From the sequence record NC_019407.1: a stretch of 64,000 nt of DNA; one strand, given 5' to 3'. Shown piece by piece: positions 3,833-64,000 of this stretch. Below the pieces are notes generated by a model. That model did no database searches and had not been told where the DNA came from. It saw nothing but the letters and a program-made list of their open reading frames with translations. The stretch's first letter is position 1. Each line of letters begins with the position of its first letter. The position numbers were made by a program, and so were the translations under genes.

Positions 3833-3876
3833 GTTGTGTCGACATAAGCTCTAGCCGTGGTTTTCCGGCCTGTCAA
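3833..3876 (-). promoter_or_regulatory. class-B promoter cassette (variant box)
   Basis: TTGACA-N17-TAGAGC-N7-GACACAAC, then GGAGG. Confidence 0.8.
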
Positions 3877-3892
3877 CACACAACCGCCAAGG

Positions 3893-3928
3893 GTCAAAAG
3901 AAAACCGCCGCCCCGAAGGACGGCGGTC
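3893..3928 (-). terminator. Rho-independent terminator
   Basis: ACCGCCGTCC-TTCG-GGGCGGCGGT followed by TTTCTTTT on the minus strand. Confidence 0.88.
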
Positions 3929-3953
3929 ATGACAGAGCATGTCAGGAGGGACG

Positions 3954-6077
3954 TCAGACGTCCAGAGCGAAGGCCGGCGGGGAGACGTCCGGCTTCTGAA
4001 TGATGAATCCCCGATCCAAGAGGGGCGGGAAGACCTGCTTGAGCACGCCGGCCGCGACCCCGGCTTCCTCGGCGATTTCGGCGAACGTGAAGGCCTCGCG
4101 CTGACCGGCGCTGGCGACAAACAGATCGTTGAGCGCCAGGATCACCGCGCCCGCCGGACTGATCTCGTAGGCCATGTCGAAATTCGGGTCTTCCGACAGC
4201 CGCAGCAGGCCTTCCGCCTCCAGGTTCGCGATGAGCGCCTTGAGTTGGTCGACCTTGACCGCGCCAAGATGGGTTTGGATTTCCCAGGGCGCCGCCGGCT
4301 CCTCGGCGCGCACGGCTTGCAGCGTCGCGATCAAGGCGATCGCCGGCATGGCCCGCACGATCATCTCGTCGCCAACCGTCAGGTCCGGGGTGTTGACCAG
4401 CAGGTCATTGATCACCGCGTCGCCGTGGGTCTCGACATAGGTCCGCAGCCGCTTGAGGGCGACCAGGAAATCGTCCTTGGTGATCGGCTCGATGCGGAAG
4501 GTCAGGAGCGGGTCGGTCGGAATCTCCGAGAAGTAGGCCCGACCCCGGTGGCTCCAGCCCTCGACCACATGCAGGAAGAGATCGATCGGCATGGCGACGG
4601 CGCCAAAGCCCAGTCGCGCATCGTCCGTCGCCTCCTCGACCTGCGCCAAGGCGTTGTCGATCGCTTCGAGCGTGAAGCCCCCGACAAGGCCGTTTTCCGC
4701 CGCGTCCAGCACGTTGGCCGCTTCTTCGGTGCCGAGCCCTTCGACGACCATTTCCGAGGCCTCCTGAGCCGTTTCCTGCGGCAGGGCGTCGGCGAGCTTG
4801 CTCATCGCCTCGGCGACGCCGCTCGTGTCGAGTTCCAGCTTCAGGGCCAGCTTCTCGGGACGCGCCGAGTAGGGCACGCCCTGGATCACCACGGCGCCCA
4901 GGTCGCCGACGACGCGCTTGGTCACTTCCAGATAGGCGTAGCGCGAGGCGGCGTTGAGCAGCGACAGCCGTTCGAAGACGATCTGCTGCTCCTGCTCGCG
5001 CGACAGGATGCCCGTCTCCAGGATGAACAGCGGCTCGGAGCCATCCAGCGGGGGCTTGGCCTCGCCGTCGTCTTCCGGAAGGTCCTCGTCGAAATCGGCG
5101 CCGCTGATCGGCTCGCTCTCCGGCGGGGTGAAGCGGATGCCCGGCTCGCGGGGCGGTTCGGCGGGAGTGGCGTCGTCGAGAGGCATGTCGGTCCTTTGAG
5201 GCTTGGAGGTGATGAAGAGCGTGGTGAGATCGACGTCCCAGACCCCGCGCCCGTCGGTGAAGAGCGCCATGAAGGTCCCCAGGCGCGCATCCCAGCGGAT
5301 GGTCTGGATCACGCCGTTGACGTCGCCATAGACGCCGGTCGCCCCCACGAGTTCATCGCGCAGGACCTCCGCATGGTCGTGGCACTCACCAAGCGTCGCC
5401 GGACGCACGGCGTGGAACGGGTATTGCTGATAGGCGCCCGGCGGCGAGACGAGGCGGACATTGACGTAGAGCGGCCCCAGATAGGTGTGGGCGTCGCGCA
5501 GGAAGCCGACCACGGTCTCCCCGTCGTTCTGGGTCGCCACCACGGGCATGCCGGCGCAGTTAGCCGTCAGGACCGCCGGATAGTCCTGGGGATAGGCCAC
5601 GGCGTAAAGGTGGAGATGATCACCCCGACGCTGGGCCTTCCAGTCGGCGACGCGACCGGCCGGCACGCGCGTGGCCCCAAACTCCGGCGTCTCCTCGATC
5701 AAGACGCCGCCGTCCGGAAGGTCCGCCTGCCCGACGTAAGGAACGACCTCGCTATGGCTGACGCTCCAGGCGGGCTTGGGAAATTGCGGGGTGATCATGA
5801 TCTTCTCGGTGAAGGTGAGATTGATGGCGTCGGCGTAGTGGACATACGGGCCGACCGGGGTAGTCCAGGGCGGATCGCCCTTGCGGATGTCCGACAGCGG
5901 CACCGCGACGTGCCTGCCGTTGGGCTGGACGATGTCGGCCAGGATGCGCGGCGGCTGGTGAATCAGGGTCACGACGTGCCCCTCGCCCGCCTCGAAGGTG
6001 CGGCTCTTGGGCCACCAGACCTTGGACCCGGTCCAGTGGATCGACTGGATGACGAGGTCTTGTTCGGTCCCGATCAT
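3954..6077 (-). CDS. large hypothetical protein with a possible C-terminal winged helix
   Basis: 707 aa with an acidic Pro-rich linker; ends FTFAEIAEEAGV...LLDRGFI. Confidence 0.8.
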   Translation of the reverse strand: MIGTEQDLVIQSIHWTGSKVWWPKSRTFEAGEGHVVTLIHQPPRILADIVQPNGRHVAVPLSDIRKGDPPWTTPVGPYVHYADAINLTFTEKIMITPQFPKPAWSVSHSEVVPYVGQADLPDGGVLIEETPEFGATRVPAGRVADWKAQRRGDHLHLYAVAYPQDYPAVLTANCAGMPVVATQNDGETVVGFLRDAHTYLGPLYVNVRLVSPPGAYQQYPFHAVRPATLGECHDHAEVLRDELVGATGVYGDVNGVIQTIRWDARLGTFMALFTDGRGVWDVDLTTLFITSKPQRTDMPLDDATPAEPPREPGIRFTPPESEPISGADFDEDLPEDDGEAKPPLDGSEPLFILETGILSREQEQQIVFERLSLLNAASRYAYLEVTKRVVGDLGAVVIQGVPYSARPEKLALKLELDTSGVAEAMSKLADALPQETAQEASEMVVEGLGTEEAANVLDAAENGLVGGFTLEAIDNALAQVEEATDDARLGFGAVAMPIDLFLHVVEGWSHRGRAYFSEIPTDPLLTFRIEPITKDDFLVALKRLRTYVETHGDAVINDLLVNTPDLTVGDEMIVRAMPAIALIATLQAVRAEEPAAPWEIQTHLGAVKVDQLKALIANLEAEGLLRLSEDPNFDMAYEISPAGAVILALNDLFVASAGQREAFTFAEIAEEAGVAAGVLKQVFPPLLDRGFIIQKPDVSPPAFALDV

Positions 6078-6499
6078 GCGGACGCCGCCGCGCCGGCCGG
6101 CGTCAAGCCGTAGATGGTGGGGCCTCGCGGCGACTTGCCGATCGCGACCACTTCCAGATAGCCCATATTGTTCAAAGCCTTTGCCGTTTCATGATCGGGA
6201 TGGTCGGTGAAGACGTTGAGCCGCCCGCCTTCGCCCATCGCCTGGGCGGCGCGCAGAAGGCTCGCCTCGGCTTCGGTCAGGGTGACCAGGGCGACGTCCT
6301 CCAGCGCCACGTCGATCACGCAGGTCTGACCCTGATGAACGAACTCGATGATCGCCAGCCGGCGATAGGTCCCCGGCAGGACCGCGAGGCAGACGCCTCG
6401 GACCTCGACCTTCTGGCGGGCGGTGATCGGGAGATAGAGGCTCGTCTTGACGGCCTTGCCCTTGAGGGACAGATGCTCGTGCGTCGCCAGCGGGATCAT
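6074..6499 (-). CDS. hypothetical protein
   Basis: ATGA overlap; C-terminal LNNMGYLEVV...YGLTPAG resembles a wHTH wing. Confidence 0.78.
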   Translation of the reverse strand: MIPLATHEHLSLKGKAVKTSLYLPITARQKVEVRGVCLAVLPGTYRRLAIIEFVHQGQTCVIDVALEDVALVTLTEAEASLLRAAQAMGEGGRLNVFTDHPDHETAKALNNMGYLEVVAIGKSPRGPTIYGLTPAGAAASA

Positions 6500-6741
6500 G
6501 GCTCGACCTTCCGGACAGTGTAGGAGAATTCGTCGTGGACGCGACCGTCGAAACTAGCCTCGTAGCCGGGGCCGAGTTCGGCCAGGATGCGCGCCTCGAT
6601 CTCGGCGAAGTCGATTTTCGCCATCGCCTGTTCGGCCGCCCGCATCTGCTGGAGGAAGCCGTCCTTGATCTGGCGCCCCGCCTCGGTGCGGATCGGGATG
6701 TTCTGGATCGGCGGCTCGGATTTCGACAGACGCTCGCCCAT
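6496..6741 (-). CDS. hypothetical protein
   Basis: 81 aa from MGERLSK, with ATGA overlaps at both ends. Confidence 0.7.
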   Translation of the reverse strand: MGERLSKSEPPIQNIPIRTEAGRQIKDGFLQQMRAAEQAMAKIDFAEIEARILAELGPGYEASFDGRVHDEFSYTVRKVEP

Positions 6742-7289
6742 CAGGCCCTCCGGCGATAGACCCGCACCGGGCGGGTGGGGAGGCGTTTCTCGGGCGGCTT
6801 GTAGGCGACCAGAGCATGGCTGATGCAGTAGACGCCCGCCTCGGCGCGGCACCCGCAATGGCCAAAGTCCGGCGAGTTCGGGTCGCCATAGGGCCAGCGG
6901 CACATTCCGCGCTTGAGTTCGGCCGTCGCGAACAGCCGCGCCGGGCGCGGCGGGATGACCGCCGTTCCTTCGGGGACCAGGGCGAGCTTGGGCTTGGCCG
7001 GCGGAGCGGGCTTTTCGACCTTCTTGGGCTTGCGCGCCGTGGCCTTCTTGACCTTGCGGACCTGGATGCCCAGGCCGCGCGTCTTCTTGCGGCGGGCGGT
7101 CGGAGGCGGAACCTTCTCGCCCAGTTCGCCGGCGGCCTTCAGTCGGTCGGCCTTGCCGCAGACGGCGCTCTTGGTGCGCGGCACGCTCAGGCGCTGACCG
7201 ATCTCCTTGGTCCCGACCGGCTCCGCCCAGAGCTTCTTGAGCAGGGCGATGTCCTCGTCCGGCCAGTCGGAATTCCGCTTCTTCACCAC
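6741..7289 (-). CDS. gcrA: GcrA-like cell-cycle transcriptional regulator
   Basis: N-terminal WPDEDIALLKKLW...TKSAVCGKADRL and C-terminal CRWPYGDP...FGHCG...YCISH match the two conserved GcrA domains, joined by a basic Pro-rich linker. Confidence 0.92.
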   Translation of the reverse strand: MVKKRNSDWPDEDIALLKKLWAEPVGTKEIGQRLSVPRTKSAVCGKADRLKAAGELGEKVPPPTARRKKTRGLGIQVRKVKKATARKPKKVEKPAPPAKPKLALVPEGTAVIPPRPARLFATAELKRGMCRWPYGDPNSPDFGHCGCRAEAGVYCISHALVAYKPPEKRLPTRPVRVYRRRA

Positions 7290-7296
7290 GCTTGCA

Positions 7297-7476
7297 CTAC
7301 TCCTTGATCTCGACGCTCTTGGGCGGATTGGGATGAGGAACGAAGACCAGGGCCACGTCCTGACCGCCGGTATAGCGCGTGCGCCGACTGTAGAGCCAGC
7401 CGCCTTCCACCGCCAACCGCTCGGTCACCTGACCATCGGCTTCGTCGATCTTTTCCCACTTGGACTTCTTAGCCAT
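7297..7476 (-). CDS. small hypothetical protein (59 aa, below the ORF-track cutoff)
   Basis: Hand translation MAKKSKWEKIDEADGQVTERLAVEGGWLYSRRTRYTGGQDVALVFVPHPNPPKSVEIKE, preceded by GAGGGG. Confidence 0.78.
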   Translation of the reverse strand: MAKKSKWEKIDEADGQVTERLAVEGGWLYSRRTRYTGGQDVALVFVPHPNPPKSVEIKE

Positions 7477-7497: not shown

Positions 7498-7526
7498 ACC
7501 CTAGAGGAGCGTTCGAGTGTTGACAA
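7498..7526 (-). promoter_or_regulatory. leftward sigma70-type promoter for the gcrA cluster
   Basis: TTGTCA-N17-TAGGGT on the minus strand. Confidence 0.65.
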
Positions 7527-7560
7527 GCACCAATGTCGCTGGCTTTCGAGTGTTGACAAG
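7512..7560. repeat. 16-bp direct repeat TTCGAGTGTTGACAAG x2
   Basis: Exact copies at 7512-7527 and 7545-7560. Confidence 0.9.
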
Positions 7561-7597
7561 TCCGGTGCTCGTCTATAGGGGAGACCGGGACGACAAC
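7553..7597 (+). promoter_or_regulatory. class-B promoter cassette
   Basis: TTGACA-N17-TAGGGG-N7-GACGACAAC, then AAGGAG. Confidence 0.8.
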
Positions 7598-7611
7598 GAA
7601 AGGAGCCTGCC

Positions 7612-9534: not shown

Positions 9535-9789
9535 ATGCTGACCAAGGACGAGATCACCTTCGCGGGCCTGATCAAGGCCATGGAGGACGCCCGCCGCACC
9601 GCCAAGGCGGCGGGCGATCTCGTCAGCACGGCCGAGATCGACCGCTGGTTCAAGGAACACGCGCCGATCATCCGGGAGGTCCGCGACAAGGCCGAGGCCG
9701 ACGAATTCGACGCTGGCGCGAGAGTGTTGACAACCTCTGAGGAAGGGGCTAAAGACACCCTCGACGACAGCGAAAGGAGCCTGCCTTGA
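9535..9789 (+). CDS. hypothetical protein
   Basis: 84 aa; the 3' end overlaps the next promoter. Confidence 0.7.
   Translation: MLTKDEITFAGLIKAMEDARRTAKAAGDLVSTAEIDRWFKEHAPIIREVRDKAEADEFDAGARVLTTSEEGAKDTLDDSERSLP
9727..9771 (+). promoter_or_regulatory. class-B promoter cassette
   Basis: TTGACA-N17-TAAAGA-N7-GACGACAGC, then AAGGAG. Confidence 0.8.
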
Positions 9790-12924: not shown

Positions 12925-12937
12925 GAGAGGAGTTCCC

Positions 12938-55066: not shown

Positions 55067-55067
55067 C

Positions 55068-55271: not shown

Positions 55272-55340
55272 CCCAAGTCACGGACTGTAGGTTTCGTGAC
55301 AAGGTGAGATATTCCACAACGATTTCAAAGGCTTACTGCG

Positions 55341-55589
55341 ATGTCGATCCGCACGTTCTTCCACGATCTGGCCGTCCGTTTCGTCGTTTTGGGGTGGATT
55401 TTTGCCCGAAAACCGCTGAAATGGGCTCCAAAAGGGCATAATTTTCAGCCCAAACCGCCGGTCCAGGTCGGCGCCCTGGCGGCCGGCTCGCTCCTCGCCC
55501 TCAGTCTGGCGCTCGGCGGGCTCTGGTTCCGCTTCACGTTTCCGGACAAAAGTCAAGTGGTCTCGCGCCGGCCGCAGGCTATGTCATAG
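55341..55589 (+). CDS. small membrane protein
   Basis: Two hydrophobic segments. Confidence 0.55.
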   Translation: MSIRTFFHDLAVRFVVLGWIFARKPLKWAPKGHNFQPKPPVQVGALAAGSLLALSLALGGLWFRFTFPDKSQVVSRRPQAMS

Positions 55590-55650
55590 ACCGTGGGCTT
55601 CGTGACCAGATCACGCTTCCGTTACCGCTCCAGCCCTTGTGAGGCCTCGG

Positions 55651-55755
55651 ATGTTCGCCTTTCTCCGCCGGCTCAGCCTCGCCGCCGTCCATGGCGTGCT
55701 CTGGGCGATCCTCCTGGCGATGTACGCCGTGGGCGGGCCGCGCCGCGCGCCCTAA
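55651..55755 (+). CDS. 34-aa hydrophobic peptide (not in the ORF track)
   Basis: Hand translation MFAFLRRLSLAAVHGVLWAILLAMYAVGGPRRAP; GAGG upstream. Confidence 0.5.
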   Translation: MFAFLRRLSLAAVHGVLWAILLAMYAVGGPRRAP

Positions 55756-55807
55756 AGCGCCATATCTGACGCCTAAGGCCCCCTAAGGCCTCATCTGTGA
55801 GACATTC

Positions 55808-55843
55808 AACGCCCTCGTGTTCCTCTGAACGCGGGGGCGTTTT
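55808..55843 (+). terminator. Rho-independent terminator
   Basis: AACGCCCTCGTGTTC-CTCT-GAACGCGGGGGCGTT followed by TT. Confidence 0.7.
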
Positions 55844-55951
55844 GACGTCGGCGCATTTTTGACTTGACGCGCGAGCGTTTTGACGCGGGCGCATTTTCGA
55901 TTCGACGCGCGAGCGTTTTGACGTCCGAGCATTTTTCAACTTGACGTCGTT
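55837..55951. repeat. 3 x 38-bp tandem repeat
   Basis: GCGTTTTGACG..GCATTTT..(C/T)T(T/C)GACG units at 55837, 55875 and 55913. Confidence 0.88.
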
Positions 55952-55975
55952 CCATTTACCGGGAGCGCCTTAGGG

Positions 55976-56142
55976 TTAACGCCGGCCGCCGAGCCCTGGG
56001 GCGATTTACCACCGCCACGTTAACCTAACGCCTGTTAACCTATCGGTTGTTAAGGTTAACGCCCCGTTAGGGTTAACGCCCCTTAACCCTGCCCGCGTTA
56101 AGGTTAACGCGCCCGCCGCCCGGCCCTACCCGTTAACCTTAA
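55976..56142. repeat. TTAA/GTTAAC cluster
   Basis: 11 TTAA in 167 bp, including GTTAAGGTTAAC twice and its reverse complement once. Confidence 0.8.
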
Positions 56143-56194
56143 CCGCCAGACCCCCGCGCCCAGGCCCTACCCGGTAGGGCCTGACGGCCCTACC
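56122..56194. repeat. GGCCCTACC x3 with a perfect inverted repeat
   Basis: Copies at 56122, 56163 and 56186; GGCCCTACC-C-GGTAGGGCC at 56163-56181. Confidence 0.75.
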
Positions 56195-56253
56195 GGGTAT
56201 GACCCCGCGCCCCGGCGGAGGCCAGGGACCGCCCCGGCGCTTTTTCGCGCCCG

Positions 56254-56285
56254 TTTACCTTTTGTTAACGTCTGGCCTCTAGGGT
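56254..56285 (+). promoter_or_regulatory. CtrA-box promoter P1
   Basis: TTTA-N7-TTAA-N11-TAGGGT. Confidence 0.75.
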
Positions 56286-56333
56286 CGCCCTTGTCCCCGC
56301 CGCACTCCCGCGCCGGGCAAGGAGCTTCCCGCC

Positions 56334-56519
56334 ATGGTCCCCGACTCGATCATGAACCCCCGCGACCACTTCCACCGCCTGCGCGAGGAAACCGCCCGCG
56401 CTCTGGTCGAGGCCTTCGCCGAAACCGACCCCGGCGAGGATTACCGCGCCGAGGAAAAGGCCGGCGCGTGGGTTGTCGCCTATTACGACGCGGCGGGCGA
56501 ATTCGTCGCCTATCTCTAA
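56334..56519 (+). CDS. small hypothetical protein
   Basis: SD AAGGAG after P1. Confidence 0.75.
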   Translation: MVPDSIMNPRDHFHRLREETARALVEAFAETDPGEDYRAEEKAGAWVVAYYDAAGEFVAYL

Positions 56520-56543
56520 CCGCCTTCGCCCCCTGGCGCCGCG

Positions 56544-56575
56544 TTAACGGTTTGTTAACATGTCGGCGCCAGGGT
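56544..56575 (+). promoter_or_regulatory. CtrA-box promoter P2
   Basis: TTAA-N7-TTAA-N11-CAGGGT. Confidence 0.75.
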
Positions 56576-56618
56576 CGCCCTAGCCCGGCGCGTCGCCGCG
56601 CCTTCGGAGAAAACCGCC

Positions 56619-57422
56619 ATGCTCTACACCCCCGCCGCCCGCCGCCTTCGCGGCTATCGCGAAACCGCCGCGAAGAACGCCGAAATTCACGCCCGCCCGC
56701 ACATGGCCGGCAACGTCGCCGGCTACAACGAGTCGGTGTGGCCGACGACGGCGCTAGGCGTCGCCGCCAAGGCCGGCGCCTTCAAGCGCCCCGAAACCGC
56801 CGGCAACTGGTCGGAGGATCGCAAAGCCTATTACGCCCCCGCGTGGCCGGCCGGCTGGCGCGTGCTGGGCACGGCCGAAGAGGTCTGCCGCAAGGAAGGA
56901 TCGCGCCGGGTGGAACATTCCGGATGGTACACGACGCCCGACGACTACAGCGCCACGCTTTCGGGCTATGTGCTGCAAATCCCCGCCCGCGACGGGGTCG
57001 CCCAATACGTCGCCGGGACCGCCCATAGTGAATGGGACGGGGTGACCCTCTACCCCGCCGACCGCTACGACAACCCGCTTGACGCGGCGAGCGCCGCCGA
57101 CCGTCACGCCGAACGCGACGCCGAAGAGGAACGCGAATATCAAACCGCGTGGCAAGCGGGCCAGCGCTACGCCGAACTCGGCGCCGAAGCCAAGGAGGCC
57201 CGCAAGGAAGCGCTGGCGATCCTCGCCGAACGCCGCAAGGTCAAGGGGCTGGAAACCCCCGCCTTGTGCGGCGCGATCCGGGCGCAGGTCGAGGCCCTGC
57301 TAGGCCGGATCGAAGAGGCGCGCGAGGCCCGCGCCAAGCTCAAGGAAGGCGAGGATTCGCGCCTCATGTTCTACCCCTCCGCCCGCCTCGTCGCGGCCTT
57401 CAATGACGGGGCGGCCGGGTGA
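56619..57422 (+). CDS. hypothetical protein
   Basis: SD GGAG; 267 aa. Confidence 0.82.
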   Translation: MLYTPAARRLRGYRETAAKNAEIHARPHMAGNVAGYNESVWPTTALGVAAKAGAFKRPETAGNWSEDRKAYYAPAWPAGWRVLGTAEEVCRKEGSRRVEHSGWYTTPDDYSATLSGYVLQIPARDGVAQYVAGTAHSEWDGVTLYPADRYDNPLDAASAADRHAERDAEEEREYQTAWQAGQRYAELGAEAKEARKEALAILAERRKVKGLETPALCGAIRAQVEALLGRIEEAREARAKLKEGEDSRLMFYPSARLVAAFNDGAAG

Positions 57423-57628
57423 AGGTCGCCCGCGACGCCTTCGCCGTGTTCTGGACCCTCCCCGCCGGAGGGGTCCAATTTCATGCGGACATGAAACGGG
57501 CGCTCTACCCGACCGCCCGCGACGCCGCCCGCGCTTTTCGCGCCATGTTCCCCCGTGACCGCGTTCGGAGCGTCCGCGACGCCTCCGGCCGCTTCCTGGC
57601 CTTCAAGGAGTCCAACCCGTGCGCCTGA
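57419..57628 (+). CDS. hypothetical protein
   Basis: GTGA overlap. Confidence 0.68.
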   Translation: MKVARDAFAVFWTLPAGGVQFHADMKRALYPTARDAARAFRAMFPRDRVRSVRDASGRFLAFKESNPCA

Positions 57629-57900
57629 CTAGCTACAACGTCAACGGAACCGGCTTTAAGGGCGGCTCCGCCCCGCCCGTCCCCGCCCAAGGCCTGACCG
57701 GGCACGCCGACGGCTTGAACCTTTGGGTTCCCTCGCGCGAGCATATCGCCGCCATGCTCCCGCAACGCTGGCGCCACGCCTTCGCCCACGCGGCGTTTTG
57801 GTATGACGCGCACGACAACAAAAAGCCGTGCCGCGCCGACCTCTACGACTCGCGCGGCCGGTACCTGACTCAGGTCTGGGCGCACCCGGTTTTCAGCTAG
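57619..57900 (+). CDS. hypothetical protein
   Basis: GTG start after AAGGAG. Confidence 0.7.
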   Translation: MRLTSYNVNGTGFKGGSAPPVPAQGLTGHADGLNLWVPSREHIAAMLPQRWRHAFAHAAFWYDAHDNKKPCRADLYDSRGRYLTQVWAHPVFS

Positions 57901-57906
57901 GCCAGG

Positions 57907-57941
57907 ACGCCCCGGAAGATTTTCCGGGGCGTTTACCTTTT
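57907..57941 (+). terminator. Rho-independent terminator overlapping P3
   Basis: ACGCCCCGGAA-GATT-TTCCGGGGCGT followed by TTACCTTTT. Confidence 0.8.
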
Positions 57942-57963
57942 GTTAACTTCTGGCCTCTAGGGT
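57932..57963 (+). promoter_or_regulatory. CtrA-box promoter P3
   Basis: TTTA-N7-TTAA-N11-TAGGGT. Confidence 0.78.
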
Positions 57964-58021
57964 GACTTTCGCCGCCGGGCAATCCCGCCCGCCGGACCCT
58001 CTTTCAAGGATTGCTCCCGTC

Positions 58022-59074
58022 ATGACCTCTCATTCCATGGTCGCGCACCGTTGGGCGCAGGACGACGAGAACGGCCGCACCGCGCGCGGCTTCAACATGT
58101 ATTTCGAGCGCTACGGGCGCGGCGCCGACCGCGTCAACGTGATTTTTTCCTACGGGACTCACTTCCCGGCCGCCGCCTTCGTGACCGACGCGCACGGCCG
58201 CCGCGTGGTCCTCTACACGACGCACCGCCGGAGCGTTTCGACCGCGAAACACCTTTCCCACATCCGCCACGCGATTCCGTCGGGCGTGCCGGTGTTTTCC
58301 GTGCCGAACGTGTCGCGGATGCACAAGCCGGGCGGCGCGGGCGACTTCCACGGGGACAACCTGCGCGCCTATATCGAGAGCGCCGCCGGCCTCGCCGAAA
58401 AGGCCAAGCGCGCCCGCGTCAACGGCCCTTGGCTGCTTAGCCAAGCCCGCGACCAACTCGCCGAAGCGCAACGCTACGCCGACGCCTTCAAGGTCAAGGG
58501 CTTCAAGGTCCCGGCCTTGGAAGACGTCGCCGGCCAATGGGCGAAGATGACGGCCGCCAAGGCGCGGGCCGAAGCCAAGGCCCGCAAGGAAGCCGAAAAG
58601 CGCGCCCGCGAAGCCCGCGAAGCCGAACGGCTCGCCGACGCCGAAGCCTTCGCCGCTTGGATGCGCGGCGAGCGCCAGAGCGCCCCGTTTAGCTACCGGG
58701 TGCGCGATGACGGGACCGTCTATCTTCGCCGCTTCCGGGGCGTGGTCCGCGACCTGCGCAGCCAAGAGCGCGACGGCTCGCGCGTCGATGAACTGCAAAC
58801 CTCGCAAGGCGCGGCCGTGCCGTGGGAACACGCGGTCAAGGCCTTCCGGTTCATCAAGCTTTGCCGCGAACGCGGCGAGAGCTTCCACCGCAACGGCCGG
58901 GTGATTCGCGTCGGACACTTCCAAGTTGACGCGATCAGCCCGAACGGGGACATGACGGCCGGTTGCCACCGGTTCGCGTGGGATGAAATCGAACGCATCG
59001 CCAGGGCCGAAGGGGTTTTCGACCTCCCCGCCGACGCCGGCGCCGTCGAAACCCGGCAAGCCGAACCGGCCTAA
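58022..59074 (+). CDS. hypothetical protein
   Basis: Start moved to MTSHSMV after AAGGA; IFSYGTHFP motif; coiled-coil centre. Confidence 0.82.
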   Translation: MTSHSMVAHRWAQDDENGRTARGFNMYFERYGRGADRVNVIFSYGTHFPAAAFVTDAHGRRVVLYTTHRRSVSTAKHLSHIRHAIPSGVPVFSVPNVSRMHKPGGAGDFHGDNLRAYIESAAGLAEKAKRARVNGPWLLSQARDQLAEAQRYADAFKVKGFKVPALEDVAGQWAKMTAAKARAEAKARKEAEKRAREAREAERLADAEAFAAWMRGERQSAPFSYRVRDDGTVYLRRFRGVVRDLRSQERDGSRVDELQTSQGAAVPWEHAVKAFRFIKLCRERGESFHRNGRVIRVGHFQVDAISPNGDMTAGCHRFAWDEIERIARAEGVFDLPADAGAVETRQAEPA

Positions 59075-59092
59075 GCCTCCCCGCCCCTCTCG

Positions 59093-59119
59093 CGCCCCGG
59101 CTCCCCGCCGGGGCGTTTT
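59093..59119 (+). terminator. Rho-independent terminator
   Basis: CGCCCCGG-N7-CCGGGGCG-TTTT. Confidence 0.82.
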
Positions 59120-59129
59120 CGTGTACGCG

Positions 59130-59161
59130 GTAACCTTTTGTTAACTTCTGGCCTCTAGGGT
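59130..59161 (+). promoter_or_regulatory. CtrA-box promoter P4
   Basis: GTAA-N7-TTAA-N11-TAGGGT. Confidence 0.75.
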
Positions 59162-59209
59162 GACTTTCGCCGCCGGGCAATCCCGCCCGCCGGCCAAGGA
59201 TCGCAGACT

Positions 59210-59509
59210 ATGAATCTTTTCGTTGTCGCCATTGACCCCGCCCTCATCCCTTCGGCCGCCGGCTTTGTGGTCGCCTCCCCCTACGGGTGCGGCAAGTGGC
59301 GCGCGTGCGTCGGGAGCGAGGCGGACATGATCGCGCTTCGCGACAAGATGCGCCGCGCGCACCCGGCCCCGGAAGGCTACAGCGTCCAGCCCCTGGCGTC
59401 GTTCCTGGCCTATCTGGAGACGGTCGGGCAAAGCCCTTATGACCAGTTTCGCGCCCGCGACGCCGCCGCCCGCATCCTTGACACCCTGACAACGCACCTC
59501 GCCGCCTAG
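59210..59509 (+). CDS. hypothetical protein
   Basis: SD AAGGA after P4. Confidence 0.78.
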   Translation: MNLFVVAIDPALIPSAAGFVVASPYGCGKWRACVGSEADMIALRDKMRRAHPAPEGYSVQPLASFLAYLETVGQSPYDQFRARDAAARILDTLTTHLAA

Positions 59510-59518
59510 CCCCGCCTA

Positions 59519-59548
59519 GCCCCCGGCCGCGCGCCGGGGGCGCTTTTC
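59519..59548 (+). terminator. Rho-independent terminator
   Basis: GCCCCCGG-N7-CCGGGGGC followed by GCTTTT. Confidence 0.7.
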
Positions 59549-59568
59549 CCTCGAAAGGATCGCCGACC

Positions 59569-59877
59569 ATGACAACCCGTCTTATCGCCGTTCGCGCGCC
59601 GACCGCCGCCGAACTCGCCGACCCGTCCAGCCGCGCGGGCGGCGCCGAAGTCGTCTTTGTGCGGCGCGACCGCGAAGGCCGCACGCGCCTTGTGTTCGCC
59701 GCGACCTGCTACGGCTCATATCAGCAATGGGGCGAAACCCGCGACGTGCTCGCCGACAACGTCGAGGCGGTCACCGTCTGGGCCGAAGGTATGGCGGCCG
59801 TCGCCGACCTCATCGACGAGGACGACGATTTCGAGGGCGACGACGCCCCGGCCGAAGACGACGACGGGGAGGCGTGA
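59569..59877 (+). CDS. hypothetical protein with an acidic tail
   Basis: SD AAGGA. Confidence 0.78.
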   Translation: MTTRLIAVRAPTAAELADPSSRAGGAEVVFVRRDREGRTRLVFAATCYGSYQQWGETRDVLADNVEAVTVWAEGMAAVADLIDEDDDFEGDDAPAEDDDGEA

Positions 59878-59880
59878 GCC

Positions 59881-60300
59881 ATGCGCACAACCAAGGCTCA
59901 ACGCTTCGCCGCCATCGCCTTTGACGCCCTGGCCAAGGCCCTAAGCGAGCCGCGCCAAGCCGTCGCCCGCGTGACCAAATGGGAGGGCGCGGGTCATAGC
60001 TTCGCCAACCTGCAACGCGATTATGAGCGGTACGGCCCCGGCTCGCGCTCATGGTTCGGCCGGGCTGAAATGCGCTTCTTTGGGACGCGCCTAGAGGCCG
60101 CGCCGCTGGATTTCCCGGCGCTGGGCTGCACCCTCTTTCTGACCTCCGAAACCCCGCCCGGCGCCGGCCGGGTCTGGACCCTTCGCGCCTATGTCTGGGC
60201 TTCGGCCGATATCACCACGCTAACCCATGGCGACGAAACCGACGCGGCGACCGCGCAAGCGGCCTTTGACCTGCTTTGGAGGGTCCTTTCGCAGCGGTAA
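59881..60300 (+). CDS. hypothetical protein
   Basis: SD GGAGG; the stop codon lies in the P5 box. Confidence 0.75.
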   Translation: MRTTKAQRFAAIAFDALAKALSEPRQAVARVTKWEGAGHSFANLQRDYERYGPGSRSWFGRAEMRFFGTRLEAAPLDFPALGCTLFLTSETPPGAGRVWTLRAYVWASADITTLTHGDETDAATAQAAFDLLWRVLSQR

Positions 60301-60328
60301 CCTTTTGTTAACTTCTGCCCGCTAGGGT
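60297..60328 (+). promoter_or_regulatory. CtrA-box promoter P5
   Basis: GTAA-N7-TTAA-N11-TAGGGT. Confidence 0.75.
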
Positions 60329-60376
60329 CTTCTTGCGGCCGGGCAATCCCGCCCGGCCGCCCAAGGATTGGACCGC

Positions 60377-60649
60377 ATGACCCGCGCTCAAGCCCTCGCC
60401 GAAATGAACGCCCTTCCCGGTATCATCGCCTCCTTTGAGCGCGAGACGGGTGAATATCGCGTCACCCTGCGCTTTGGTCCGCTCCCCATGGGGCGCGGCG
60501 CCCAAGAGTGGATGCACGCGCGCCGCGAAGCCGTCGCCAGCTACAGCGACGACAAGGCCGACGCCCTGGCCACCGCCCGCGACATGTCCGCCCGCTGGGA
60601 GGCGATGAGCGCCGAAGAGCGTTCGCGCCTCTATCATAACCCCGCCTAA
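60377..60649 (+). CDS. hypothetical protein
   Basis: ATG 9 nt after AAGGA. Confidence 0.78.
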   Translation: MTRAQALAEMNALPGIIASFERETGEYRVTLRFGPLPMGRGAQEWMHARREAVASYSDDKADALATARDMSARWEAMSAEERSRLYHNPA

Positions 60650-60715
60650 AGCCCCGCGCGCCGCCCTGGCCTTCGCCGGGGCGGCTCCCTCAACCCCTCG
60701 CAAGGATCGCACCCC

Positions 60716-61000
60716 ATGACCGCCCGTAAGCCCCTGACCAAGGAACAAAAGGCCCGCCGCCGCGCGACCCGTCGCGCCGCCCGCCTCAACTGGTCGGATG
60801 AGCGCCGCGCTCGCGAATTCGAGCGTCAAGCCCGCTTCTTCCTGATGATCGCCACCCACGCCCAAGGCGCCGGCCAAGGCCAGGAAGCCGCCCGCCTCGC
60901 CACGGTCGCGCAACGCAAGGTCACAAACTGGCGCATGGCGCAGGCCTGCGCCCGGATTAACGCCCTGGCCGCGCATCCGTTCGCGGCCGTGGTCGCCTAA
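60716..61000 (+). CDS. Arg-rich hypothetical protein
   Basis: SD AAGGA. Confidence 0.75.
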   Translation: MTARKPLTKEQKARRRATRRAARLNWSDERRAREFERQARFFLMIATHAQGAGQGQEAARLATVAQRKVTNWRMAQACARINALAAHPFAAVVA

Positions 61001-61013
61001 GGAGGCCCGCCCG

Positions 61014-61196
61014 ATGACGCACCCTCACGCCCTGGCGCTGATCGCCCTCGCTGAAAAGGTGTTGCCGCTTACCCGGCTGCACCCGCTCGACCAACGCGCC
61101 GCCGCCGTCGATCTAATCGGCGACCTCTACCGCCTCGCCGACGATATCGACGCGACCCCGCAAGCCGCCGCCCTGGCGCAACCGAAGGCCGCCTAA
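61014..61196 (+). CDS. small hypothetical protein
   Basis: SD AAGGAGG. Confidence 0.75.
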   Translation: MTHPHALALIALAEKVLPLTRLHPLDQRAAAVDLIGDLYRLADDIDATPQAAALAQPKAA

Positions 61197-61199
61197 GCC

Positions 61200-61790
61200 A
61201 TGAACCCGAACCGCTACCGCCTCGCGCCCCGCGACCGCTTCAGCCGTGAGCTTTCCGAAACGCTCTATCAGGCGGCCGAAGCCGTCGCCCGCGTGATTCC
61301 GCTCATGCCGGAGTCCGCCCCCGATGAGCGCCGCGCGCTGGGCAAGGTCCGCGCCGACCTTCTAACCCATAGCGCCGGCGCCCTTGTTCCCAAGCCGCCG
61401 GCCGCCGTGCTCGCAACCCTCATTTGGGTTGTCGAGATGGCGCAAGATCGCGCCACAAACGCCGATTTCAACACCGCCCAAGAGGGACTCGACGAACACG
61501 AGTCCCTCGCCTTTGTCGCCGACTGGCTGGAGGCCGAAGGCCTAGACGTGACGCCGATTCGCAACGCGCAACCGTCCGCCGACGCCCTGGCCGAACTCGC
61601 CGCCCGCCGCGACGCCGAACAAGCGGCGCTAGACGCCTTGGAGGCCGAAGCCCTGGCCGAAGCGCCGGGCGACGTGATCACCGACATCTTGCGCCCTTAT
61701 CTGGGCTCCATCCTGGCCGAAACCCACGCCGACGACGTGCTAGACGCCCTCACGCGCGCCGGCTTCCAAATCACCCGCAAGGAGGCCTAA
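61200..61790 (+). CDS. hypothetical helical protein
   Basis: Packed chain. Confidence 0.78.
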   Translation: MNPNRYRLAPRDRFSRELSETLYQAAEAVARVIPLMPESAPDERRALGKVRADLLTHSAGALVPKPPAAVLATLIWVVEMAQDRATNADFNTAQEGLDEHESLAFVADWLEAEGLDVTPIRNAQPSADALAELAARRDAEQAALDALEAEALAEAPGDVITDILRPYLGSILAETHADDVLDALTRAGFQITRKEA

Positions 61791-61795
61791 AGCCC

Positions 61796-62365
61796 ATGAC
61801 CGACTCCGCCAAGATCACCGGCGCGCTCGCGCTACTCGCCGTCGCGGCCGATAATCTCCGCCAAGGCCCGGCCATGTCCAAAGCCGCCGACAACGTCACC
61901 AACGTCTGTAACTACGCCCTGACGCGCGCGGCCATGCTCAAGGCCGCCGACCAAATCGGCGAGGCGCTGGAGGCGCTGGGCGCCCTGCAAGCGGGCGGCT
62001 ATGTGATCGCCCGCCGCCGCGACGTTTTCACCGATGCGGGCGAGAAGCTGGGCGACCTGTTGGCGGCGCTTTATGACGCCGTCCCGAACTACGCCGTAAG
62101 ATCGCAGCGCCTCGCCGACGCCCTGGCCCCGGCGCGAAATTACGTCTATCAGCCCCGGTTCCGGGTCAAGCTGGACGCCGCGCCCGGCGCGCTTTTGACC
62201 GACTGCGACACGGGCGCAACGGTCTATTTCCAGCCGGGCGACGACGCCGACGCCTTCCGGGCCGAATTCGCCCCGTGGGTTCACGCCGCCAACGTGACGG
62301 GCGACGGCGCGGCCCTGGCCTCGATGATGAACCCGACCGCCGAAGAGTATTTCAGCCCCGCCTAA
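61796..62365 (+). CDS. hypothetical protein
   Basis: Start moved to MTDSAK after AAGGAGG. Confidence 0.78.
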   Translation: MTDSAKITGALALLAVAADNLRQGPAMSKAADNVTNVCNYALTRAAMLKAADQIGEALEALGALQAGGYVIARRRDVFTDAGEKLGDLLAALYDAVPNYAVRSQRLADALAPARNYVYQPRFRVKLDAAPGALLTDCDTGATVYFQPGDDADAFRAEFAPWVHAANVTGDGAALASMMNPTAEEYFSPA

Positions 62366-62475
62366 GTCATCATTCCTACCGTCTATGACTTGTCACCGGC
62401 CGAAGTCTTACCCGGTGACAGTCTGGGCAAGTAAAGCTCACTCTGGATTTTATGACTTAGCGCAAAGGATTGAAA

Positions 62476-62550
62476 TTGCTCGAAAAATTCCTAGAAGCTC
62501 ACAAAGTCGTTTTCTGGCTGCTCTTGCTGGCCTGTTTGTGGCGCTTTTAA
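62476..62550 (+). CDS. candidate 24-aa hydrophobic peptide
   Basis: TTG start 6 nt after AAAGGA; MLEKFLEAHKVVFWLLLLACLWRF; atypical AT-rich codons. Confidence 0.35.
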   Translation: MLEKFLEAHKVVFWLLLLACLWRF

Positions 62551-62579
62551 CGGTTTGTTAACCCCTGGCCCTCTAGGGT
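62547..62579 (+). promoter_or_regulatory. CtrA-box promoter P6
   Basis: TTAA-N7-TTAA-N12-TAGGGT. Confidence 0.8.
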
Positions 62580-62633
62580 CGAATTCCCGGCGCGGCAATC
62601 CCGCCGCCCGGCCTTCCTTCGGAGCTTCTGATC

Positions 62634-63080
62634 ATGTTCGCTTCCGTGACCCTTCCCGCCCATGACGCCCAAGGCCTGAGCCTCGAAACCGTCCACATGG
62701 TTTTCGCCCGTGAACTGGCGCAACACTTCGAGCACGTAATTTCCGCCCCCGTGATCGAAAGCTGGACCGACGAGGAAACCGGCGCCGTGCAAGAGCAAGC
62801 CGCCGTTTGCTTCACCGTTTCGGCGACCCCGGCCGCGTGGGAAGCCAAGGGCGGCCGGCTCGCGCGCCGGCTGGAAAACCTCGCCGCGCGCTATGCCGCC
62901 GACTGCGACGCCCCGGCCCTGACTGTCACCCATTGCGACGGGCAAACGGTCTATGTCGGCGCTCTGGAAGCCCTGGCGCGCCCCGCCCCGGTGCAAGGCC
63001 CGACCCGCGCGGCGGACCCGGCTTTCCTCCCCCGCCAGCGTGAAGACAAGGCCGCCCGCTTCGATCGCCTGACCGCCTAG
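62634..63080 (+). CDS. hypothetical protein
   Basis: SD GGAG after P6. Confidence 0.78.
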   Translation: MFASVTLPAHDAQGLSLETVHMVFARELAQHFEHVISAPVIESWTDEETGAVQEQAAVCFTVSATPAAWEAKGGRLARRLENLAARYAADCDAPALTVTHCDGQTVYVGALEALARPAPVQGPTRAADPAFLPRQREDKAARFDRLTA

Positions 63081-63098
63081 CCCCTGGCCTCCCCCTAG

Positions 63099-63129
63099 CG
63101 CACCGCCCCTAGAAAGGCGGTGCGCTTTT
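63099..63129 (+). terminator. Rho-independent terminator
   Basis: GCACCGCC-N8-GGCGGTGC followed by GCTTTT. Confidence 0.78.
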
Positions 63130-63138
63130 CTGTGTCTG

Positions 63139-63171
63139 TTTACTTGTTGTTAAGGAATAGCCTGCTAGTGT
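63139..63171 (+). promoter_or_regulatory. CtrA-box promoter P7
   Basis: TTTA-N7-TTAA-N12-TAGTGT. Confidence 0.72.
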
Positions 63172-63222
63172 CTCCTTGTCGGCGGACGCATCCCGCGCCC
63201 GCCCCTTTCTGGATCGCTTCCC

Positions 63223-63615
63223 ATGGCTCGCCCCTCTGACCTGCTCAACGTCAACGCCGCCCGCGTCCTGGCTTGCCTTGAGCCTATCGCCGCCGCCGCT
63301 AAGACGGCCCCGGCCGCCGACCGCGCCGCCCTTTCCTACCTGCTCGACGCTGGCGAGTATGTCGCCGCGTGGCGCCGCAACCTCACGGAAACCGACCGCC
63401 GCAAGGCCTATGGCGCGGCCTGCGCCGCCGAAGCCCTGGCGCTCGCCAACGCCTATCAGCCCGCCACCCTGCAAGGCGGCGCCGTCCGCCGCGCTCTGGG
63501 CGCCTATGCCGCCGCCCTTAAGGTCCTGCTAGACGGGGAGCCGGTTAAGGCGGTCCGCGCCGCCGAAGGCGCGGCGCTTTCGGTCCGCGCTCGCTACGCC
63601 AACACCCGCCTTTAA
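63223..63615 (+). CDS. Ala-rich hypothetical protein
   Basis: ORF after P7; the stop codon lies in the P8 box. Confidence 0.75.
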   Translation: MARPSDLLNVNAARVLACLEPIAAAAKTAPAADRAALSYLLDAGEYVAAWRRNLTETDRRKAYGAACAAEALALANAYQPATLQGGAVRRALGAYAAALKVLLDGEPVKAVRAAEGAALSVRARYANTRL

Positions 63616-63643
63616 CCTCTTGTTAAGACCTCCCGGCTATGGT
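63612..63643 (+). promoter_or_regulatory. CtrA-box promoter P8
   Basis: TTAA-N7-TTAA-N11-TATGGT. Confidence 0.78.
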
Positions 63644-63669
63644 CGGGAGGTCGCAAGGAGACACCCGAC

Positions 63670-63864
63670 ATGACCCGCCCCGGCCCCGCCTCGCTCTTGA
63701 CCCCGCAAGCCCGTTTCTCGTCGCCGCGCGTCCTGATCCTTCCGGGCGCGGCTCCCATGCCGATTCGCCAGCCGCGCGGCCTTTGCGCCGTCGAGTGCGT
63801 CGCCCTTGGCGTGACGCTGGGCGCGGCGCTCTACCTCGCCGCCCGCGTGTTCGGTCTGGTCTGA
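63670..63864 (+). CDS. small protein with a C-terminal TM helix
   Basis: SD AAGGAG; VALGVTLGAALYLAARVFGLV. Confidence 0.7.
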   Translation: MTRPGPASLLTPQARFSSPRVLILPGAAPMPIRQPRGLCAVECVALGVTLGAALYLAARVFGLV

Positions 63865-63927
63865 CCAGACCCCCGCCCCGCCCCCGGTCGGACCGGTCGG
63901 GGGTGTGTCCCATAATGACACACCCCC
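63854..63927. repeat. cluster of perfect palindromes
   Basis: GTCTGGTC-T-GACCAGAC, CCGGTC-G-GACCGG and GGGGGTGTGTC-CCATAAT-GACACACCCCC. Confidence 0.8.
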
Positions 63928-64000
63928 CGCCACCTAGTATCTTTTTTGATTCGGAGGGACCCAAAGGCCCCCTACGTTAACCATTTTTGGCGGCGCCCCC

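Follow-up and report, generated by a model that had tools for sequence, protein, structure and literature searches.

The last 64,000 nucleotides (nt) of the genome of Caulobacter virus Magneto, a phiCbK-like phage, contain two promoter classes, A and B, that occupy separate territories and produce distinct predicted 5' ends, together with one copy of a third promoter class, C. Under the reading that we prefer, to which we assign a probability of roughly 0.55, the phage relies on the host RNA polymerase and employs at least three promoter types in parallel, not as a two-step cascade: class A, confined to the terminal repeat, would depend on the phosphorylated form of the host regulator CtrA (CtrA~P), class B would consist of strong promoters that the host sigma-73 holoenzyme uses unaided, and class C would be the likelier set of targets for the GcrA homologue of the phage. 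An initial annotation, made from the letters of this DNA, had proposed the two classes A and B, and both proved to be real.

The analyzed stretch (hereafter the window) is 100% identical to positions 154930-218929 of record JX100812.1. Its genes point leftward in 1-7476 and rightward throughout from 7612 on, and its right end is occupied by one copy of a long repeat, as annotated in the record (repeat_region) and tabulated by Gill 2012:

54055-64000, plus strand: right copy of the 9,946-bp direct terminal repeat

The repeat at the right end is identical to the left end of the genome and carries all class A promoters. The distribution of motifs was judged on the whole Magneto genome, that is, on the window together with the remainder of the record. 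The phages compared were Magneto, phiCbK, Swift, Rogue, BL10 and Colossus, of which Rogue belongs to another genus and shows ~78% DNA identity; in addition, a megablast search with positions 55700-63900 matches 25 other Caulobacter phage records.

Class A comprises eight copies, all on the plus strand, the number that the initial annotation had given, and all were recovered between 56254 and 63669. Each copy combines a CtrA-type box with a hexamer (TAGGGT, TAGTGT, TATGGT or CAGGGT) that lies 10-11 nt past the box, a spacing that is constant in 63 copies from six phages. The perfect motif TTAA-N7-TTAA occurs three times (56544, 62547 and 63612; 0.00 expected from 100 shuffles) and nowhere in the genome outside of the terminal repeat, and the other five boxes differ from it by a single letter of the first half-site (TTTAC or GTAAC). 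When the TAGGGT-type hexamer is taken as the predicted -10, the 5' base of the box falls at about -38; host activation by CtrA places the 5' base of the full motif at about -39 (Zhou 2015, PMC4287350), so the CtrA-type box recognized initially would fit the host full motif at its activating position. The eight units, with the start of the box as the first coordinate, are as follows:

56254-56317, plus strand: unit 1, box TTTACCTTTTGTTAAC, -10 TAGGGT 56280-56285, hairpin 56296-56317 with loop ACUCCC (covariance-model score 30.1 bits); heads gp332 (56334); terminator-like hairpin just upstream, 56236-56251
56544-56602, plus strand: unit 2, perfect box, -10 CAGGGT, without the UCCC-loop hairpin; heads gp333 (56619)
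57932-57995, plus strand: unit 3, box, TAGGGT 57958-57963, hairpin 57972-57995 with loop AAUCCC; heads gp336; a 13-bp terminator, 57905-57934, overlaps the start of the box
59130-59194, plus strand: unit 4, box, TAGGGT 59156-59161, hairpin 59169-59194; heads gp337 (59210); terminator 59092-59116
60297-60360, plus strand: unit 5, box, TAGGGT 60323-60328, perfect 10-bp hairpin 60335-60360 (-27 kcal/mol across 40 nt; the top covariance-model match, 45.6 bits); heads gp340 (60377)
62547-62611, plus strand: unit 6, perfect box, TAGGGT 62574-62579, hairpin 62587-62611; heads gp345 (62634)
63139-63203, plus strand: unit 7, box, TAGTGT 63166-63171, hairpin 63181-63203 with loop AUCCC; heads gp346 (63223); terminator 63097-63126
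63612-63669, plus strand: unit 8, perfect box, TATGGT 63638-63643, without a 5' hairpin; heads gp347 (63670)

Given that terminator-like hairpins lie immediately upstream of four of the eight copies, the repeat appears to be divided into short, separately driven units. Class A would thus amount to eight short units, about half of them insulated by terminators, and, with the CtrA full box in the place of the -35 element, firing would be limited by the availability of CtrA~P. For the products of the genes that class A heads, Pfam and PHROGs give no function. The resemblance to host CtrA full-motif promoters extends to the use of TTAA-N7-TTAA instead of a -35 element with the 5' base, here the predicted one, near -38/-39 (Zhou 2015, PMC4287350); unlike the host promoters, the phage copies are far more uniform, the first half-site is degenerate in five of the eight, and the 5' hairpin is undescribed at host targets.

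The CtrA gating of class A is supported but already published. In phiCbK-like phages, predicted CtrA full sites cluster in the repeats, upstream of small genes of unknown function, and promoter fragments of phiCbK gp005 and gp018 were shifted by CtrA~P in gel shifts, whereas the activity of the gp005 and gp018 reporters in ctrA(ts) was down >29-fold and 5-fold, respectively (Mascolo 2022, PMC9437464; here and below, the accessible part of that account). By position and sequence, the window promoters at 56544 and 62547 are orthologues of the gp005 and gp018 promoters; the gating is thus demonstrated for the orthologues of two of the eight copies, and the window copies would share it. The elements described in that account are the same, namely, CtrA full sites in the repeat and CtrA-dependent promoters orthologous to 56544 and 62547; the fixed link of 10-11 nt to the -10 element, the insulating terminators and the covarying 5' stem-loop were not met in its accessible part. 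The 'lytic deferment' model proposed there has the repeat promoters fire not at once but deferred, in the predivisional cell (Mascolo 2022, PMC9437464). This model agrees with the behavior of host full-motif promoters, which follow CtrA in predivisional cells, and with the silencing of CtrA-activated genes by SciP in swarmers (Zhou 2015, PMC4287350), and is the opposite of a class that fires first in the swarmer. The proposal of the initial annotation that class A fires only in the CtrA~P-high swarmer is thus supported neither by the host data nor by the deferral that Mascolo 2022 proposes.

Several further observations concern the same region. A dense array of CtrA half-sites lies just upstream of the first class A promoter:

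55965-56145, no strand assigned: ~11 TTAAC-type CtrA half-sites within 165 nt

A second dense array, of TTAAC/GTTAAC, is found at 54842-54920, and 48 of the 51 TTAAC/GTTAA words of the window fall within the terminal repeat. Loose CtrA-type boxes outside of the repeat are present at record positions 18064 (minus strand) and 80539 (plus strand), one of them directly upstream of gp039, which encodes a transglutaminase-like peptidase. In unit 8, the gp347 promoter, an inverted repeat (63628-63652) surrounds the -10 element and shows compensatory differences among Magneto, phiCbK together with Swift, Rogue, and BL10. In unit 3, an in-frame ATG at 58022 with a well-placed AAGGAUUG Shine-Dalgarno sequence precedes the annotated start of gp336 (58037), so that this gene probably starts 15 nt before its annotation.

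In six of the eight class A copies (56254, 57932, 59130, 60297, 62547 and 63139) the -10 element is followed by a GC stem with a UCCC loop, in agreement with the number of hairpins noted initially. The loop predicted by RNAfold is AAUCCC, ACUCCC or AUCCC, closed by a C-G pair, so that the eight-letter 'loop' of the initial annotation takes in the closing pair. The significance of this element lies in its structure: the word CAATCCCG by itself is not enriched (7 against 3.4 expected), and the single-sequence z-scores of the hairpins are modest (-1.1 to -2.3), the cause being the GC-rich region. In a set of 15 distinct versions from Magneto, phiCbK, Rogue and BL10, paired cells make up 80.7%, against 65.3% in shuffles, a level that none of 500 shuffles reached; two-sided changes are found in seven of the ten pairs, and the covariation score is 0.354 as compared to 0.131, and to at most 0.157 with the pairs slid. 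Such two-sided compensatory changes point to selection on the pairing and not to recent copying. A covariance model built on these 15 versions yields 31 matches with E <0.01 in 308 kb, all of them in terminal repeats, on the plus strand and just past a class A -10 element. When the first 40 nt of each predicted transcript were folded, with the distinct class A 5' ends taken from six phages, a helix of -12 kcal/mol or lower within 6 nt of the predicted +1 was found in 34 of the 49 leaders of class A, in none of the 37 of class B and in 6 of the 25 of class C. Colossus, a distant phage that lacks GcrA, has ~18 class A promoters of the same build, with three different stem/loop families. Rfam gives no family for the hairpin, either in the whole window at the gathering threshold or in the repeat at E 1.

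From these patterns we infer that the conserved feature is a stem-loop at the extreme predicted 5' end, and our preferred reading is that of a protective 5' hairpin: class A RNAs would begin with a stable GC stem-loop 0-5 nt from the predicted start, which would prolong the life of the transcript. This arrangement resembles the 5'-terminal stabilizing stem-loops of the ompA type known from textbooks, in which a stable hairpin lies a few nt from the 5' end (here the predicted one), the pairing being kept and the letters free; unlike in those stabilizers, the loop is fixed within the phiCbK and Rogue group. The fixed UCCC loop in that group leaves room for a specific partner, and the loop might possibly serve as a recognition site as well.

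Class B is represented by 12 copies in the window, 11 on the plus and one on the minus strand; the number and the start coordinate given in the initial annotation were both recovered. Ten of these copies contain the 9-mer GACGACAAC, all on the plus strand (0.43 expected), one has the variant GACGACAGC (9763), and one divergent copy is on the minus strand (3876-3817). In a position-weight scan, the 11 plus-strand copies score 49-72 and everything else scores 7 or less. The common build consists of TTGACA (in 11 of the 12 copies, with TTGCCA in one), a spacer of 17±1 nt, a hexamer that starts with TA, 6-7 nt that mostly end in CCTC, and the 9-mer, the distance from the -35 element to the 9-mer being 35-38 nt:

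3817-3876, minus strand: class B variant, TTGACA 3876-3871, TAGAGC, GACACAACGACAG 3840-3828; heads gp225-gp224-gp223
7553-7611, plus strand: class B, -35 element 7553-7558, 9-mer 7589-7597, 23-nt leader; heads gp231 (7612)
9727-9785, plus strand: class B, 9-mer variant GACGACAGC 9763-9771; heads gp239 (9786)
12879-12937, plus strand: class B, 9-mer 12916-12924; heads gp245 (12938); spacer complementary to the Shine-Dalgarno region over 11 bp
16735-16791, plus strand: class B, 9-mer 16771-16779; heads gp252 (16792)
18251-18305, plus strand: class B, 9-mer 18287-18295; heads gp256 (18306)
25961-26017, plus strand: class B, 9-mer 25997-26005, flanked by a perfect 8-bp inverted repeat; heads gp274 (26018)
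27364-27421, plus strand: class B, -35 element TTGCCA, 9-mer 27400-27408; heads gp278 (27422)
31151-31211, plus strand: class B, 9-mer 31187-31195 in an 8-bp inverted repeat, then TTTT; heads gp284 (31212)
33641-33733, plus strand: class B, 9-mer 33677-33685, extra 40-nt hairpin before the Shine-Dalgarno sequence; heads gp290 (33734)
36112-36170, plus strand: class B, 9-mer 36149-36157; heads gp296 (36171)
37505-37562, plus strand: class B, 9-mer 37542-37550; heads gp299 (37563)

Genome-wide, about 22 class B copies are found at record positions 113-192 kb, always oriented with the genes, that is, on the minus strand and leftward up to record 159 kb, and rightward from 162.5 kb. The separation of the two classes that had been proposed thus stands insofar as they do not overlap in the window, but class B is not confined to 3.8-37.5 kb and extends to the left on the minus strand through record 113-159 kb; a weak class B variant lies just inside the left boundary of the repeat. 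In the 50 kb of Rogue that were examined, 17-18 copies are present, with the 9-mer unchanged and the spacers different, and at least eight of them can be paired to Magneto copies by the downstream genes. An orthologue conservation profile carries little weight, since it includes only four pairs of equal geometry at sites selected by motif. Among the matches listed in a scan of IMG/VR for TTGACA-N22-27-GACGACAAC, there were only single, scattered chance occurrences in unrelated contigs.

Conservation in class B reaches beyond the hexamers. Among 37 Magneto and Rogue copies, which were chosen on the 9-mer and the -35 element so that their invariance is partly by construction, the 9-mer is present in 35-37, TGGC lies 10-13 nt upstream of TTGACA (about -48) in 27-32, and GTG precedes TTGACA in 28-32. 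Of the 37, only 4 have a -10 hexamer that ends in T, as expected from the initial description of a -10 that lacks T at -7, and a scan with the standard sigma-70 consensus, which requires the final T, gives no sites in 20-39 kb, this consensus being of the E. coli type and possibly different from that of the host sigma-73. The first 17 predicted transcribed positions contain 8 T among 629 cells. From the 9-mer to the annotated start codon there is a leader of 21-28 nt in every plus-strand copy except 33677, where a 40-nt hairpin intervenes between the 9-mer and the Shine-Dalgarno sequence, which ties the 9-mer to the promoter and not to the ribosome-binding site. Class B leaders fold less well than shuffles (median z +0.79). 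Given that the invariance of the nine letters is linked to the -10 element and not to the Shine-Dalgarno sequence, one common factor is suggested.

Class B would consist of at least 22 strong, activator-independent sigma-73 promoters on both strands, with a TAnAAn-type -10 element, that fire once the DNA meets the holoenzyme and drive groups of small early genes, the tgrL operon among them. The transcripts would start at or next to GACGACAAC and continue through an unstructured, nearly U-free leader of 21-28 nt into a strong Shine-Dalgarno sequence, a design suited for immediate translation, and a common factor might read the invariant 9-mer, most simply for the joint shut-off of early expression. 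The early promoter sets of T4 and T5 known from textbooks are similar in that many primary-sigma-type promoters with conservation beyond the hexamers are scattered among small early genes; those promoters need no phage protein, and class B could be placed with them by analogy only. Unlike the T4/T5 sets, class B has nine invariant nt at the predicted start and a -10 element without the final T. Pairing of the 9-mer with ribosomal RNA was considered and dropped, a 9-mer match somewhere in 1.5 kb being weak evidence.

A separate feature is seen in about one third of the class B copies (e.g., 12879-12937, 25961-26017, 31151-31211 and 36112-36170), in which 8-13 bp of the Shine-Dalgarno region are complementary to DNA that precedes the predicted start. 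The pairing with the own upstream DNA (-18.9 kcal/mol) exceeds the cross pairing (-16.9 kcal/mol), a difference matched by none of 5000 permutations, and compensatory differences are found between Magneto and Rogue orthologues; at 31187, the stem is followed by TTTT and is terminator-like. Such a stem could form only in read-through RNA.

The timing of class B can be addressed through the operon headed by the divergent copy. The initial annotation had placed an XRE regulator in the window, and this assignment was confirmed:

2179-2556, minus strand: gp223, XRE-family regulator, Pfam HTH_3 E 3e-12, with 125 of 125 residues identical to CbK gp216 (TgrL)

The promoter of gp225-gp224-gp223 is letter-identical to that of phiCbK gp218-gp217-gp216 (tgrL). 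In the accessible part of a published infection time course (McLaughlin et al. 2023), to which all statements on expression made here refer, tgrL shows high expression, with its maximum in the first sample, at 15 min; the early group accounts for ~41% of the genes, and early RNAs fall after 15 min. The share of genes behind class B promoters roughly equals this ~41%. Given that the tgrL promoter belongs to class B, that tgrL is early and that the shares agree, class B is best read, from its sequence, as the set of early, activator-independent promoters.

A census of 11-mers in the whole genome revealed the third class, defined by GAATCTTGACA, usually after GTCGT, with ~20 copies oriented with the genes. 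Its only copy in the window lies within the coordinates covered by the initial annotation, so that the two classes described there stand but the picture of only two does not:

48803-48850, plus strand: class C, sole window copy, GTCGT, GAATC 48808-48812 abutting TTGACA 48813-48818, GGTTAAC ~25 nt downstream; upstream of gp322 and the terminase genes

Further class C copies, at record positions 18346-114460 outside of the window, precede genes for the portal, capsid, tail and lysis as well as for nucleotide metabolism and replication, often in the vicinity of a CtrA half-site of the GTTAACCA type; within 110 nt of class C, the enrichment of TTAAC half-sites is 20- to 40-fold. The GAATC of class C is a CcrM-type GANTC site, and GANTC directly precedes TTGACA in 14 of the 72 hexamers of the genome (0.1 expected). 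The motif is kept at all five sites examined in Rogue; in the Colossus equivalents, TTGACA and the downstream GTTAACCATG are kept, with GANTC in three of ~8. Class C resembles the host GcrA/CcrM promoters in that it combines GANTC with a sigma-73-type promoter and a TTAAC half-site (Haakonsen 2015, PMC4647560; Zhou 2015), an example from the host being ctrA P1, where GANTC is accompanied by a CtrA half-site that represses (Haakonsen 2015, PMC4647560; Zhou 2015, PMC4287350). The GANTC of class C is predicted at about -41 to -37, at the edge of the ~40 bp around the start that define GcrA-dependent promoters, and its context TGAATCT/AGATTCA, in place of a high-ranked YGAKTCK, is the lowest-ranked of 32 for host GcrA (Haakonsen 2015, PMC4647560).

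The GcrA homologue noted in the initial annotation was confirmed as well; it is encoded in the leftward part of the window, in an operon with a putative promoter read from the sequence:

6741-7289, minus strand: gp229, phage GcrA homologue, Pfam GcrA E 5e-25; aligns to host GcrA domains (7ye1, 5yix, 5yiu)
7498-7526, minus strand: putative promoter of the gp230-gp226 (GcrA) operon, TTGTCA 7526-7521, 17 nt, TAGGGT 7503-7498

This promoter contains no CtrA box, no 9-mer and no GANTC, and is neither class A nor class B. The gp229 protein aligns to full-length host GcrA, with both the N-terminal DNA-binding and the C-terminal zinc-containing, sigma-interacting domain, and retains the zinc ligands and the equivalents of W120, F130, Y142 and Y151. 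At the host base-reading and methyl-pocket residues R33, N34, I37 and H41, gp229 has K, S, C and D; the letters of its recognition helix are identical in the GcrA of Rogue, which is 67% identical overall. At the host sigma-contact positions G129 and F132, gp229 has D and H. Homologues of GcrA were found in 26 records, which all belong to Caulobacter phages of the phiCbK or Rogue type; Colossus has none. For GANTC, the observed/expected ratio amounts to 0.44 in Magneto and to 0.29 in Rogue, and among 24 words of equal composition none is rarer in Rogue; GANTC is depleted neither in GcrA-less Colossus (0.84-0.96) nor in the Rogue terminal repeat (1.03). The annotated 'DNA methylase' gp125 has no Pfam match.

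The differing DNA-reading residues of gp229, the depletion of GANTC and the tags of class C make class C, rather than class B, the likelier candidate client of the phage GcrA, which would then act on the promoters that head the replication, structural, lysis and packaging genes. The assistance of class B by phage GcrA that the initial annotation had envisaged finds no counterpart in the sequence: in 22 x 90 nt of class B, GANTC occurs four times, as compared to 2.8 expected, and at no fixed position. A bolder version of this view is tentative, with the odds against it: the three classes would form a three-part code on three host cell-cycle inputs, A being gated by CtrA~P, B served by bare sigma-73, and C tagged by GAATC at the -35 element and served by a phage GcrA that has evolved to read TGAATCT. 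The depletion of GANTC in the GcrA-encoding phages (0.29-0.44) but not in Colossus fits such a code which, if true, would provide a private methylation- or replication-sensitive switch for phage replication and virion genes.

No description of either 5' element was found in the literature searched, where full text gave only primer tables and unrelated papers for the 9-mer and for GAATCTTGACA. In the same literature, only CtrA sites are described as phiCbK transcription signals, no other phiCbK transcription work was found, and the class B set seemingly is undescribed. The functions suggested here for the two 5' elements are what we infer from their conservation and position.

The parallel scheme has to be weighed against other arrangements of the same promoters. 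A cascade, as originally proposed, in which CtrA~P in the freshly infected swarmer fires class A first and class A products or, later, phage GcrA enable sigma-73 on class B, could draw on the location of the terminal repeat at both physical ends of the DNA, on the presence of CtrA~P in swarmers together with the CtrA dependence of class A, and on the atypical -10 element of class B, which makes a helper conceivable; it is general knowledge that T5, with similar long repeats, expresses the repeat genes first. We consider this cascade quite improbable. Class B has a complete -35 and -10 element, with a perfect -35 that needs no activator site, and by sequence requires no class A product; the class B variant at the head of the tgrL operon has reached its maximum by the first time point; class B shows no enrichment of GANTC; a plain promoter outside of both classes serves the GcrA operon; host full-box promoters peak predivisionally and are SciP-silenced in swarmers (Zhou 2015, PMC4287350), and the firing proposed for the repeat is deferred and not immediate (Mascolo 2022, PMC9437464). 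The parallel to T5 was drawn for the long repeat by Gill 2012, and long terminal repeats with their own promoters are indeed shared with the T5 pre-early genes, but the T5 A1-like gene of Magneto is located outside of the repeat, at record positions 97.6-99.3 kb. Class B could instead be read, through TGGC at about -48, GTG, CCTC and the 9-mer, by a phage factor or a phage-modified polymerase that switches the class on or off. Such a factor would account for the conservation beyond the hexamers and for the -10 element without the final T; the phage encodes several helix-turn-helix proteins as well as a T5 A1-like protein that reportedly associates with polymerase, and the fall of early RNAs after 15 min indicates that some shut-off exists. 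A perfect TTGACA at 17±1 nt from a hexamer that starts with TA is nevertheless the geometry of a primary sigma factor, the tgrL unit is expressed at the earliest time sampled, the invariance is in part a product of how the copies were picked, and no candidate factor is at hand, so that dependence of class B on such a factor appears improbable.

With regard to the 5' elements, the alternative to a protective role for the class A hairpin is that it serves chiefly as a recognition site for protein or RNA, either in boxB-like antitermination or as a translational operator whose UCCC loop pairs with a GGA(U/G) Shine-Dalgarno sequence. The near-invariance of loop positions U16, C18 and C19 and of the closing C-G pair in the 15 distinct sequences, with a stem that covaries, is what a recognition site would show, and the terminators that separate the repeat units are what antitermination would let the polymerase pass; Colossus, however, retains the hairpin with three different loop families. 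As for antitermination, the fixed loop is as in lambda-type nut/boxB sites, but no conserved linear boxA partner is found beside the hairpin, no known RNA family matches in Rfam, and neither an N-like protein nor any recognizable domain is detected among the repeat proteins with Pfam and PHROGs. As for the operator, the loop is complementary to the Shine-Dalgarno sequence over 4-6 nt in 57932, 59130, 60297 and 63139; in 56254, the loop ACUCCC fits the GGAG of that copy. This loop pairing, when examined as covariation in the four copies, was rejected: GGAU-type Shine-Dalgarno sequences occur throughout the repeat, including on hairpin-less genes (59569, 60716), and copies with GGAG retain the AAUCCC loop (62547; Rogue 8873, 4150), so that loop and Shine-Dalgarno sequence do not covary. 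Chief service as a recognition site is, in our assessment, unlikely. Highly improbable is the proposition that both elements are functionless, copied along with promoter-leader cassettes or left over from overlapping terminators of the upstream operon. The identical spacer in three class B copies (16771, 31187, 33677), the near identity of class A 57932 and 59130, and the upstream complementarity of the Shine-Dalgarno region in about a third of class B, terminator-like at 31187, could all be taken as signs of copying or leftovers. Most class B copies, however, vary freely in the spacer, the pre-start stretch and the flanks and yet retain the 9-mer, Rogue (78% DNA identity) retains it in 16 of 17 copies with about half of the spacer positions changed, seven of the ten hairpin pairs show two-sided compensatory changes, and the hairpin module persists in Colossus with different letters.

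The parallel use of at least three host-polymerase promoter types itself faces several adverse points. All +1 positions are predicted from the distance to the -10 element, and the terms '5'-terminal' and 'initial transcribed' rest on that prediction. In the published time course, 'early' refers to the first sample, at 15 min, only. The -10 element of class B lacks the final T that an E. coli-type consensus needs, and the TGGC, GTG and 9-mer blocks could equally be read by a phage factor; a plain stabilizer would not need the invariance of the UCCC loop in the phiCbK and Rogue group. Other points concern the link to GcrA: the sites of host GcrA are concentrated near -20 and from +2 to +30, unlike the GANTC of class C upstream of these positions, and the class C context ranks lowest for the host protein; the D and H of gp229 sit where G129D and F132A abolished sigma binding by host GcrA; and class C heads both the 'early' replication and the 'middle/late' structural genes of the time course.

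Some further features of the window lie near the subjects discussed above. According to the record annotation and Gill 2012, the terminal repeat has its left boundary within the large terminase gene (52101-54833), for which an intein is annotated. At 54906-55062, GGGGACCCTGG recurs about seven times with a spacing of ~24 nt; this array, at a distance of ~0.9 kb from the physical left end of the repeat, might act as a signal for packaging or replication. A unit of ~38 nt that contains GCGTTTTGACG and GCATTTTT is directly repeated four to five times at 55829-55957. An AT-rich island (48190-48500; GC 0.34 in a genome with 66% GC) directly precedes the class C promoter, in the 700 nt of non-coding DNA that separate gp321 from gp322; Rfam gives no match for it.

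Temporal promoter classes and borrowed host regulators are familiar phage themes, and the part of the present findings that is most closely linked to the cell cycle has already been published. Phages of the phiCbK type are, however, standard tools in Caulobacter cell-cycle research, and the coordinate map of three classes would allow the published infection time course to be interpreted class by class instead of gene by gene. The 'lytic deferment' model gains defined units (box, -10 element, 5' hairpin, terminator). Compact, repeated cis-elements such as the covarying 5' hairpin and the invariant 9-nt start usually mark a shared regulator. Finally, the purpose of the phage GcrA, a question since 2012, gains a concrete set of candidate targets.

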